Positions 27,062-40,183 of a DNA stretch of 64,000 nucleotides are shown here, piece after piece (within the stretch, counting starts at the first letter, position 1; each line of letters begins with the position of its first letter). The stretch covers positions 169,880,001 to 169,944,000 of the forward strand of contig NC_082710.1 in assembly GCF_030144855.1 (NCBI RefSeq). Direction: 5' to 3'. Position numbers and translations under genes: made by a program. Origin of the DNA: Hypanus sabinus. Its lineage: Eukaryota. The notes under the pieces were generated by a model, which did no database searches, was not told the DNA's origin, and worked only from the letters and a program-made list of their open reading frames with translations.

Positions 27062-27086
27062 TTTATTGCCATTTGTTCATAGAACA
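27062..27086 (-). promoter_or_regulatory. IER3-A 3'UTR CDE-type stem-loop and poly(A) signal
   Basis: Minus strand TGTTC-TAT-GAACA (27086-27074), then AATAAA (27067-27062). Confidence 0.7.
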
Positions 27087-27537
27087 TACAGTTAATATCG
27101 TTTCAACATTTGTGAATGAAGTTACAAACAGGTACTCAGAGCGAGACCTGAACAGTTTGTGTTCCAAGATACATTATAGTTTCATCAATCAAAGTCGCTC
27201 GCACAGCAAGCACACAAATAAAATATTAGATAAATAGATAATGTTTAATATAGTTAGGTGGCATTTACTGCCCCAGGTTTGCTACGGGGTAGCCTAATAA
27301 ATGACGAATAATTAAACGTGGTCGACGTTTAACAACAGTTACCTCTTCCGCCTGCAAAGTCCTGCAGGGAGGGCCCCCGACATGCAAGCCCCGAGTCCTG
27401 ACAAGACCTGGAAAGACACCTCCACCTCCCCTCTAAATTGCAAGCGGTGCATCCTGGCGACCGAGCTGACACTCATTTTATTAGCCGAGGAAAGCCCGAG
27501 TCAAATTTACCAAGCGACTGAGGCCGGCGGCATCTCT

Positions 27538-28918
27538 TCACCGTGCAAGGGAACTGGATTTCAGGCCGTCCCCGCTCTTGACCTCACGGAGGCCCAAGAC
27601 GACGCACCGCCGATCGGGAAGATCTCTGGCAATTCCCTGGTGGAGCGACGACCCGTTCCGTCTGCACACATGGACGATTGATCCAGCGATTCTGACCCGT
27701 GGGATCCCCACGGCTGAGCTGGCTCCAGCCCCCGATATGGGCAGGTTTGGCAGTACCAGGGCGGATCTGTTAGTGGGCAACAACGGAGTCACGTCGCCTG
27801 GTGCCGCCGGAGCAGCGAGCTCCTCGTTGCCCTCTGTGGCTTCGTACACCTGGAGCAGGACAATGGCCAGGAACAGGAAGAACATCCTCTTCACCCAGTC
27901 CTTCTTTTCCGGCGGGAGATACTTTCTGACCTGCAGATGAACAACAGAAACCATCAACATTGCTATTGCACTTATCATGGCTTAACAACTCAAAGCTCTT
28001 TACAGTCTACCGCGTATGTTCCGTCTTGTGCTTATAATCGCGATCGCTCCAGGCAAAATTTGCGCGCAGAAAGATTTACACGATCAGCAACCGTCAGATC
28101 TCTCGTTTCCGTTCCCACAAACAACTCCCGCATGGAGCATTGTTTCAGGGATAAATAACCTGAACCGATGTGGAAGGGGGTGGAACGCCAGGGAGAACTG
28201 ATCCAAACTCCAAGTTGCAATCTGCTATTCCCCTGAACTCCTATCGCCTGAGTAAAGTGACCAGGAAAGTCTGCAACAAAGACTGTCCCCCTCAGCACCA
28301 GATGCGGACACTTGGGAGAACATTTACCGTTTATTTTGCTCTACACCCGCCCCCTCCCACTTCGGTATTTTCTGAGAGTATTGAAGCAGGGAATCCAAAC
28401 ATGAACAGGGGGTGCTGACATTCCCCTTATCTACACTCTCCCTCACGCCCAGCCAATACAAACAGCCCAAATCCATCCATAACAAAATCAACCTGACTTT
28501 ACAAGTGAGTCCTCTTTTAGTTTTGATCATGACCTGCAGATGCGCGCCAGTTTAACACCTGCAATCGGTTTGGGAGCTCTCCACATTAAATGACCGGTTG
28601 CTTGAAGTACTAAGAGATTGGCGCAGTTTTAAAGGACAGTGCACATTGGGCATTGATTGAGATGGGGTTAAGATCAATTTAATATATTCTGGGGAATTGG
28701 ACACTTACCTGCGCCGGATAGAGGACTTTAACAGCTCGGCGCCTTCCCGGGGACCGGCCACCGATCGACCCACGGCGCTTGACCACTGCGACTGGCTGGA
28801 AGGAGAAGATCTCCGGCTCGATGCCCCTCTGCTTTTTCAGGAATGGGTCGTCCCTGTACTCCAGCGAGAGCCCGGGGACCATGGAGGCTCGCTGGGGGTG
28901 GTGGCAGCCCCTACACAT
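27538..28918 (-). CDS. IER3: Immediate early response 3 (IEX-1)-like protein, copy A; exons 28918-28709 and 27930-27538; 200 aa
   Basis: Spliced ORF MCRGCHHP..EPEIFSFQP..GRRRAVKVLYPAQ|VRKYLPPEKKDWVKRMFFLFLAIVLLQVYEATE matches IER3 motifs (PEIFTF, RRVLYP.V|VRRQLP, hydrophobic TM stretch); CAG|GTAAGT donor, polypyrimidine-CTGCAG acceptor, phase-0 778-nt intron; CpG-rich; AU-rich 3'UTR. Confidence 0.9.
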
Positions 28919-28989
28919 TGCTTCGTGGATCTGAGGAGGGTGTAACTAGACAACAACGGGAGGAGAAAAATCTGTGCTCTGAGGTTTCC

Positions 28990-29100
28990 AGTGGACGCGG
29001 GGCAATTTAAAGCCCAATCACTTCCTGCTTTCCCCAGCTCTCGCTGTCCGATTGGGTGCCTTTGATGGAGCCATCGCTGCCCCGCCTCCTGTTACACCAG
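28990..29100 (-). promoter_or_regulatory. IER3-A proximal promoter
   Basis: TATA-like TTTAAATT (29011-29004), CCAAT boxes (29014-29018, 29055-29051), ETS CAGGAAGTG (29027-29019), TCF/LEF-like CCTTTGAT (29059-29066), GC box (29080-29089). Confidence 0.6.
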
Positions 29101-29489
29101 CTTTGAGACCGCATATTTCTTTTATTTCATTTCGGGGAATAAGCTCTGGAAATAAGCCTCGAAAATGTCAGAGCAAGTTACAGCCTGACGGTTTTAGCAA
29201 TAAGCAGCTTACTTAGGTTGTCGTTGTAGATAGCACTCAAGCCGTGACCAGATTATAACACAAGCCTCAACGCAAAGTCTGCAGCTGCATTTCTCAAGTA
29301 TTTCTCCTGAGGAAGCTCATTGCTTAAAAAGGCCATAAACCATTTTTGGGGGGACAGCAGTAACAGGACACTCGGCCTCAGCCCCATCTGCCCTCTCATT
29401 ACAGCAGTCATAAACACAATAGATTCTGCAGATGCTGAAAATCCTGAGCAACACACACAAAATGCCCGAGAAAACGCCTGATCTAACTT

Positions 29490-38242: not shown

Positions 38243-38261
38243 ACCCTGCTCCGCAGCGCCA
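38243..38261 (-). other. Primer binding site, tRNA-Ser-like (TGGCGCTGCGGAGCAGGGT)
   Basis: Starts 2 nt after the LTR-terminal CA; resembles the complement of tRNA-Ser(CGA/UGA) 3' ends from recall. Confidence 0.65.
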
Positions 38262-38263
38262 AA

Positions 38264-38746
38264 TGTTGTGATGGAAATAACTGGTTCTTTGAGTCTCAAC
38301 AGTAGAGGCCTGGACACACACAGTTTTAATAATAAGGAATTTATTTACAAGGGGAAGTCAGGTCAACACAAGCAACTACAATACACAAGAAGCGGTGTGG
38401 GGACAGGGTACAGTTACACAAACAAAGAACAAGGGAAAAGCACTACGACAGCTATCCCCCTTGACCTTGGATAGCTGCGGCTCCCTTACCAGGACAAACG
38501 ATAGACCTTCCCAAGCATAAATCAATGCACTTACCTCCAATGTGGTGGTCTGTAAGAGAGGTTGATTCAGGGACAAGTCTCACCTTTTATAGCATGGGGC
38601 TGGGCGAGATAATTAAATTAAAGTGACCAGTAATTTAGGTGTGCACTGATTAGTTGGGAGGGACCAAATGTTGATTGGCATATGGTGTGTCCTCCGACCA
38701 GCCAGGTGGCAGTGCATCTGTCACATGGCCGGTATCTCTGGATACA
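38264..38746 (-). repeat. 5' LTR (483 bp)
   Basis: Partner of 31676-32160; TATAAAA ~38588, donor AG|GTAAGT at 38534, AATAAA 38345-38340. Confidence 0.95.
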
Positions 38747-39266
38747 ACCACACAGGGAGTATTGTATTCGCTTTTGGTTGCCTCATTTACAGGAATGACA
38801 TGGAAGCTTTAGAAAGGCTGTCAGTGTGTCTCTCTGACACATTTAGTCGATACAACATAGAACAGGCCTTTCTAGCCTGCTGAGCCGCGCTGCCCAGCAG
38901 CCCACCAATTTAACCTTGGTCTATTTACAGGACAATTTACAACGATGTAACCTACTAACTGGTAGGTCTTTGTACTGTGGGAAGAAACTGGAGCACCCAG
39001 AGGAAATACACTCACAGGAAAAATGCACTCTGACCACAAGACTTGCTTACCTAATTGTAACTCACTAATGTTTATTCATTAACTCACAGCTAAACCACAG
39101 CAGTGACATGGGCATTTTTCAGTGCTTATAGGTCATTTACAGTTGAATTAAGGTGGGAAATGATGAACTTGCTCTTGCTTGATGTAGTATTGGAACACAA
39201 AGATAGAATATTAAAATGCCGGTGGTCTGTCCAGAATTAGGCTTCAGAACATTGCAATAACCATTG

Positions 39267-39451
39267 AACGTAAATATGAAGAAATCTGCAGATGCTGGAA
39301 ATCCAAGCAACACACGCAAAATGCTAGGGGAAACACAGCATCTATAGGAAGAACTAGAGTCGACGTTTCGAGCCAAGACCTTTCGTCAGGACTGTACTTC
39401 TTCCTATAGATGGTACCTGACCTACTGCATTCCCCCAGCATTTTGTCTGTG
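39267..39451 (-). mobile_element. Short palindromic Penelope-derived insertion with hammerhead-like motif, 15-bp TSD
   Basis: TSD TTGCAATWACCATTG at 39252-39266 and 39452-39466; absent from the paralogous site in copy A (~26980); minus strand agtcCTGACGA..GAAAcGTCgact. Confidence 0.8.
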
Positions 39452-40183
39452 TTGCAATTACCATTGTGCTTATGTAAAAAAGTTCCTTATTGCCTATTAG
39501 TAAAACCATAAGCTAAGATATTCCCCAAAAATAGTTTATTGACATGTGTTCTCAGAACATACAATTCATATGGTTTAAACTTTTGTGAATGAAGTTACAA
39601 ACAGGTACTCAGAGCGAGACCTGAACAGTTTGTGTTCCAAGATACATTATATTTCCATCAATCAAACAAAAGTCGCTCGCACAGCAAGCACACAAATAAA
39701 ATATTAGATAAATAGATAATGTTTAATATACAGTTAGGTGGCATTTACTGCCCCAGCTTTGCTATGGGGTAGCCTAATAAATGACGAATAATTAAACGTG
39801 GTCGACGTTTAACAGTTACCTCCTCCGCCTGCAAAGTCCTGCAGGGAGGATTATTAGAAAAATAGGAAATATTAGATAAATAGATAATATTTAATGTACT
39901 GGTCAGGTGGGATTCACTGTCCGAGGATTGTTGGCATATGCTGTGGGGGTAGCCTAATAGCTGACGAAGCCAACGTGGCGAAGTTTAACAGTTACTCTCT
40001 CTGTCTGCAAATTCCTGCAGAGAGTGACCGCCACATTCAAGCCCCGAGTCCTGACAAGACCTGAAAAGATCCCCTCCACATCCCCTCTAAGTTGCAAGCG
40101 ATCGAGCTGACACCGTGCATCATCTTATTAGGCGAGAAGAGCCCGAGTCAAACTTCCCAGCGCCAGAGTGCGGCGGCATCTCT

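Follow-up and report, generated by a model that had tools for sequence, protein, structure and literature searches.

Do the two tandem copies of the immediate-early gene IER3 in the Atlantic stingray (Hypanus sabinus) carry the constitutive decay element (CDE) through which Roquin acts on mammalian IER3 mRNA, and would a base change in the loop of one copy have weakened that control? The question is raised by a 64-kb stretch of stingray DNA, referred to here as the window, in which two two-exon IER3 (IEX-1-like) genes, copies A and B, lie in tandem on the minus strand. Near the end of each 3' untranslated region (UTR), a short hairpin precedes the distal poly(A) signal:

27073..27087, minus strand: copy A terminal hairpin (putative CDE), 15-mer AUGUUC-UAU-GAACAA; stem 27086-27082 with 27078-27074, loop 27081-27079
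27062..27067, minus strand: copy A distal poly(A) signal AAUAAA, 5 nt 3' of the 15-mer
39546..39560, minus strand: copy B terminal hairpin, 15-mer AUGUUC-UGA-GAACAC; loop 39554-39552
39535..39540, minus strand: copy B distal poly(A) signal AAUAAA, 5 nt 3' of the 15-mer

Both hairpins were read directly, as UGUUC-UAU-GAACA (minus strand, 27086-27074) in copy A and UGUUC-UGA-GAACA (minus strand, 39559-39547) in copy B. A first-pass annotation of this DNA had described a canonical UAU loop in copy A and an altered UGA loop in copy B, both upstream of AATAAA, and its letters and coordinates proved exact. Each hairpin consists of five Watson-Crick pairs and a 3-nt loop, with a mismatch at the next position (A.A in copy A, A.C in copy B). 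The upper stem UUC/GAA, three pyrimidine-purine (Y-R) pairs with a 3' purine stack, is common to both copies and to all orthologues sampled. The hairpins lie 470 nt (A) and 643 nt (B) from the stop codon, and we infer that they belong to the 3'UTR from the poly(A) signal that follows. On sequence comparison, it is probable (roughly 0.6) that the terminal hairpin is the orthologue of the mammalian IER3 CDE and that it is weakened in copy B and still within the preferred loops in copy A.

The TGTTCNNNGAACA pattern occurs exactly twice in the window (0.13 expected), both times at the homologous hairpin sites. In contrast, the bare consensus TTCYRYGAA is present at chance level (3 found versus 4.26 expected); significance therefore rests on position and orthology and not on motif count. 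The two remaining matches to this consensus (29863-29871 and 31533-31541) lie outside any UTR, in line with chance, and were set aside. A search of Rfam returned nothing relevant at E values up to 10.

IER3 is a validated CDE/Roquin target (PMC4063670, PMC4958271). The 15-nt CDE of human IER3 that was crystallized with Roquin-2 (RC3H2), AUGUUCUGUGAACAC, forms five Watson-Crick pairs with a UGU loop, and the oligonucleotide binds RC3H2 with a Kd of 356 nM (PMC4614863). Copy A is identical to this 15-mer at 13/15 positions and copy B at 14/15. The corresponding blocks in other species are as follows:

Human oligonucleotide: AUGUUC-UGU-GAACAC (reference)
Psammomys (rodent): AUGUUC-UGU-GAACAC, 15/15 to human, with AAUAAA 1 nt further on
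Pristis (sawfish): AUGUUC-UGU-GAACAC, terminal block of the IER3 3'UTR
Rhinoraja (skate): AUGUUC-UGU-GAACAG, terminal block of the IER3 3'UTR
Narcine (electric ray): AUGUUC-CGU-GAACAC, followed by AGUAAA
Heptranchias (sixgill-type shark): AUGUUC-UGC-GAACAG, terminal block of the IER3 3'UTR

In all four of the other cartilaginous fishes (Pristis, Rhinoraja, Narcine, and Heptranchias), the block is located 4-5 nt ahead of the poly(A) signal. GUAUGUUC plus GAACA is invariant in 7/7 aligned sequences, and the remainder of the rodent UTR is unalignable with the fish UTRs. Within the cartilaginous fishes (six sequences), the block has 13 invariant columns out of 16, compared with 75 of 202 for ungapped columns overall, and its three variable columns are exactly the loop. 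Given the close match to the human element and the same place before the poly(A) signal in elasmobranchs and rodent, orthology of the stingray terminal hairpin with the mammalian IER3 CDE is strongly supported by the alignment, and there is strong evidence of the same kind that the element is older than the split of cartilaginous and bony vertebrates. The earlier proposal that the CDE is conserved back to cartilaginous fish is thus borne out by the human match and by the same block in four other elasmobranchs and a rodent. An alignment of gnathostome IER3 3'UTR ends, which had been suggested as a check on it, gave a stem invariant in the seven sequences and variation in the loop only, with the exception of gar, discussed below.

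The human/mouse IER3 CDE, reportedly that of Leppek et al. 2013, agrees with the stingray hairpins in gene, in its place at the 3'UTR end by AAUAAA, in the 5-bp UGUUC/GAACA stem, and in the 5' flanking A. It differs in the loop, which is UGU instead of UAU (A) or UGA (B), and in the distance to AAUAAA, which is 5 nt in stingray versus 1 nt in rodent. Furthermore, it occurs in one gene, whereas the stingray has two paralogous copies. The stingray hairpins add new, deeply conserved members to a known class of elements, and one paralogue bears a natural variant of the loop. Few Roquin targets have been characterized structurally, the IER3 decay hairpin being among them; as it recurs almost letter for letter beside the poly(A) signal of rays and of a shark, this control would go back to the last ancestor shared by the jawed vertebrates. 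In the literature, Roquin is described as highly conserved across vertebrates, together with the surface by which it binds stem-loops. The invariance of the stem indicates that its sequence is constrained, and not its shape alone.

The difference between the two copies is in the loop. The original CDE consensus requires a pyrimidine-purine-pyrimidine (Y-R-Y) loop. In the complex of the IER3 element with Roquin-2, Ser250 makes a direct contact, and Arg248 a water-mediated one, with the base of U9, the third nucleotide of the loop; the base of the first loop nucleotide is not contacted (PMC4614863). When all 64 triloops were placed in competition on two CDE stems, the ROQ domain significantly enriched only four loops, all Y-R-U, by 20- to 28-fold (PMC11609897). 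In reporters, a change of U3 to any other base led to higher expression, Y-R-N loops still kept some regulatory capacity, and a 5-bp stem was less active than stems of 6-8 bp (PMC6294493). The UAU loop of copy A conforms to both the Y-R-Y and the Y-R-U rule. Loop UGA of copy B departs from both and fits only the relaxed Y-R-N form. The 5-bp stem of either copy has the length of the validated human IER3 element and is below the 6-8 bp range of PMC6294493. The TNF CDE (UUC-UGU-GAA; consensus NNNNNUUCYRYGAANNNNN) shares the UUC/GAA upper stem, the 3' purine stack, the C-G closing pair, and, with copy A, the Y-R-Y loop. However, the TNF stem is longer, and copy B breaks the Y-R-Y rule at position 3.

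Regnase-1 (MCPIP1) also acts on human IER3 through a conserved stem-loop element, for which loops UAU and UGU are reported to be preferred (PMC4958271). Its target class as given there (Mino et al. 2015, via PMC4958271) combines a short stem (3-7 bp) with a pyrimidine-purine-pyrimidine triloop, UAU and UGU being the best regulated. Copy A with UAU falls inside this reported class and copy B with UGA outside it.

Pristis, Narcine, Rhinoraja, and Heptranchias were used as outgroups to polarize the loop changes. By this comparison, a G to A change at loop position 2 is derived in copy A, and a U to A change at position 3 is derived in copy B, position 3 being U or C in all four outgroups. Copy B is alone among the sequences sampled in having a purine there. 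The terminal stretch that has escaped conversion contains five derived changes in copy A and four in copy B, a balance indicating that copy B is not simply decaying faster.

How the two hairpins stayed distinct can be seen from the coding and untranslated parts of the two genes, which are arranged as follows:

28709..28918, minus strand: copy A exon 1, coding (70 aa), then a GT donor (open reading frame list and sequence)
27538..27930, minus strand: copy A exon 2, coding (130 aa plus stop; open reading frame list and annotated protein match)
27045..27537, minus strand: copy A 3'UTR, with its 3' end placed by the poly(A) signal (sequence read)
41709..41915, minus strand: copy B exon 1, coding (69 aa; open reading frame list and sequence)
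40184..40576, minus strand: copy B exon 2, coding (open reading frame list and sequence)
39518..40183, minus strand: copy B 3'UTR, as inferred (sequence read), holding a B-only block of ~174 nt

Both genes are intact, with a phase-0 intron after ...VLYPAQ in each. The product of copy A is the annotated 200-aa "radiation-inducible immediate-early gene IEX-1-like" protein of Hypanus sabinus, matched through the identical exon-2 frame (27541-27930). That of copy B is the second annotated IEX-1-like protein of this species (199 aa), with 98% identity to copy A over exon 2. A profile built from the ray IER3 proteins has hits to IEX-1/IER3 of sharks, bony fishes, amphibians, birds, and mammals. How closely A and B agree depends strongly on the region:

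Exon 2: 99.0% (DNA)
Middle of the 3'UTR (A 27299-27100): 97%
Exon 1: 89%
Last 55 nt (hairpin and poly(A) signal): 85.5%, 8 differences
Intron: 72%

The two proteins are 91% identical overall. Their earlier description as near-identical is accurate for exon 2 (99% at the DNA level) and does not extend to exon 1 (89%) or to the whole protein. The B-only block (~39814-39987) resembles an older B version of the middle UTR and carries an extra UAUUUAU stretch. Its position beside the A-like segment (97%) is, judging from the alignment, the footprint of a recent conversion or insertion. As the recently homogenized tract stops ~22 nt upstream of the hairpin, each copy keeps its own hairpin version. 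At three amino-acid sites encoded in exon 1, Hypanus A agrees with one of two Mobula proteins and Hypanus B with the second, and no site shows the opposite pairing, which lends weak support to a duplication predating the stingray-manta split.

Other elements in the same UTRs bear on how much control copy B could have lost. ZFP36/TTP is known to control IER3 through AU-rich elements. Three AUUUA motifs are found in copy A (starts 27438, 27302, and 27235) and three in copy B (starts 39881, 39782, and 39713). A scan for triloop hairpins additionally gave a candidate that is identical in the two copies:

27196..27212, minus strand: copy A upstream candidate CDE-like hairpin UGCUUGC-UGU-GCGAGCG, 7 bp including 2 G.U
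39674..39690, minus strand: copy B upstream candidate CDE-like hairpin, identical to that of copy A

The AU-rich stretch and a conserved UUUGAUUGAU motif flank the candidate, which has homologues in Pristis, Narcine (CUCAC-CGC-GUGAG), Rhinoraja, and Heptranchias. Its pairs vary by G-C / G.U / A-U and U.G / C-G / U-A routes, and 91% of cells in the alignment pair. However, column shuffles pair as often as the real alignment. The structure is compatible with the data, and the hairpin is treated as a candidate only. If it is real, copy B keeps an intact Y-R-U hairpin, which is a further argument against complete escape. The tandem CDEs of UCP3, with their relaxed consensus (6-8 bp, Y-R-N; PMC6294493), offer a parallel: loop UGA of copy B fits Y-R-N, and the stingray terminal hairpin and upstream UGU candidate may similarly cooperate in one UTR. 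They differ in that a 5-bp stem such as the stingray terminal one is less active in the UCP3 context and in that the UCP3 search excluded G.U pairs, which the stingray upstream candidate contains.

Copy A also has a canonical proximal AAUAAA at 27477-27482, 55 nt after the stop codon. Copy B has AAUAAG in its place (40123-40128 region), and the signal is not conserved in Narcine. If it were used, copy A would produce a short isoform lacking the AU-rich elements and both hairpins.

The sequence of events that we favor starts from an ancestral ray loop UGU. In copy A, the middle base would have changed to give UAU, with a preferred loop retained. In copy B, a change of the third base from U to A (UGA) would have removed the sole loop nucleotide whose base is contacted by Roquin. 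The copy B hairpin is then most likely a lower-affinity site, the effect on binding being taken from the literature, and copy B mRNA may have lost part of its constitutive decay. This mRNA would stay unstable through its AU-rich elements and possibly through the second, upstream UGU-loop hairpin. Control of copy B was probably weakened at one of several decay elements and not abolished. The suggestion in the first-pass annotation that copy B escaped Roquin-mediated decay can accordingly be kept in part: the literature on position 3 makes a weakening plausible, whereas the residual activity of Y-R-N loops, the AUUUA motifs, and, if it is real, the retained upstream candidate speak against outright escape. 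Copy B represents a natural point mutant in its native context and could be used to probe the weight of the third loop base in vivo. The pair also bears on the hypothesis that duplicated immediate-early genes diverge through mRNA stability.

Several observations weigh against the interpretation of the terminal hairpin as a conserved CDE that is weakened in copy B. The IER3 3'UTR of gar (Lepisosteus oculatus) contains AU-rich repeats but no UUC-NNN-GAA hairpin before AAUAAA. Conservation is therefore not universal, at least one ray-finned lineage lacking the element in this form, and ray-finned fishes may have lost the element or changed its form. Moreover, the 13-nt terminal hairpin folds at -1.7 kcal/mol in every species, and in context its predicted share of the ensemble is small and varies erratically whichever species is taken (~3% even in the rodent, in which the element is validated). 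As the hairpin is equally weak across species, folding does not separate A from B. No covariation was found in the terminal stem; all five pairs are invariant in the seven sequences, and covariation consequently speaks neither for nor against the structure. In addition, recognition by Roquin is largely shape-based, and the relaxed Y-R-N consensus takes in UGA. Finally, loop UGC of Heptranchias is likewise outside the Y-R-U set.

The last two observations lead to the possibility that the loop change in copy B is functionally neutral, i.e., that the shape of the triloop is read and Y-R-N tolerated, that AU-rich elements and other stem-loops dominate decay, and that the loop drifted after duplication. 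The regulatory capacity of the relaxed consensus agrees with such neutrality, as do the three AUUUA motifs and the upstream UGU hairpin candidate of copy B, and drift predicts the balance of derived changes in the terminal stretch (five in A, four in B). However, all the other sequences sampled, those of mammals among them, have U or C at position 3, the competition of 64 loops enriched only Y-R-U, and in the IER3 complex the protein touches the base of the third loop nucleotide. We consider neutrality unlikely, although it has to be taken seriously.

A more far-reaching scenario is that, after an old tandem duplication (possibly before the stingray-manta split), the IER3 pair divided its post-transcriptional control. 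The loop change in copy B, in a hairpin otherwise fixed since the ancestor of jawed vertebrates, would then have lowered recognition by Roquin and Regnase-1 and would have been kept by selection despite the conversion of exon 2 and the middle UTR, leaving a fast-decaying and a longer-lived copy of one stress-response protein. We regard this scenario as doubtful.

A weaker alternative is that the block was kept for a reason other than decay through Roquin or Regnase, as a poly(A)-site upstream element, as a target of another RNA-binding protein, or as a DNA palindrome bound by a transcription factor. The stem has remained invariant for ~450 million years without compensatory change, which is more than shape recognition needs, and the block is constantly 1-5 nt from the poly(A) signal. 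However, variation is confined to the three central bases and the arms on either side are perfectly inverted, a pattern that marks a hairpin loop, and for the human element, binding by Roquin-2 and a role in decay have been shown by experiment. A steroid-receptor response element, with the consensus AGAACA-N3-TGTTCT, was considered and rejected, as the half-sites here are in the opposite order (TGTTC-N3-GAACA). A role of this kind is improbable. Least credible of all is that the UGA loop, a single-base state in one assembly, reflects a mistake in sequencing or assembly, or a rare allele carried by the individual sequenced, and that copy B is truly canonical, as the 55 nt around the hairpin differ from copy A at 8 positions and so mark a distinct, uncollapsed locus, and there is no sign of low assembly quality at copy B, the sole N run of the window being at 11516-11834.

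That run consists of 319 N and is either an assembly gap or masked sequence. In Logan RNA contigs of a relative, a spliced 190-aa IER3 was found; the contigs break in a repeat ahead of the UTR end and are uninformative on the hairpin. For coelacanth, no IER3 protein is on record. IER3-like proteins occur two or three per contig in the sharks Cetorhinus, Hemiscyllium, and Stegostoma, and IER3 duplication may be widespread in elasmobranchs. Between the two stingray copies lies a broken endogenous retrovirus on the minus strand (window 31676-38746). Its long terminal repeats (31676-32160 and 38264-38746) are 95.9% identical, and its open reading frame fragments match RNase_H, retroviral protease (RVP), and TLV_coat envelope. 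Positions 20421-20827 hold a tandem repeat (period ~96 nt) whose copies are ~90% identical.

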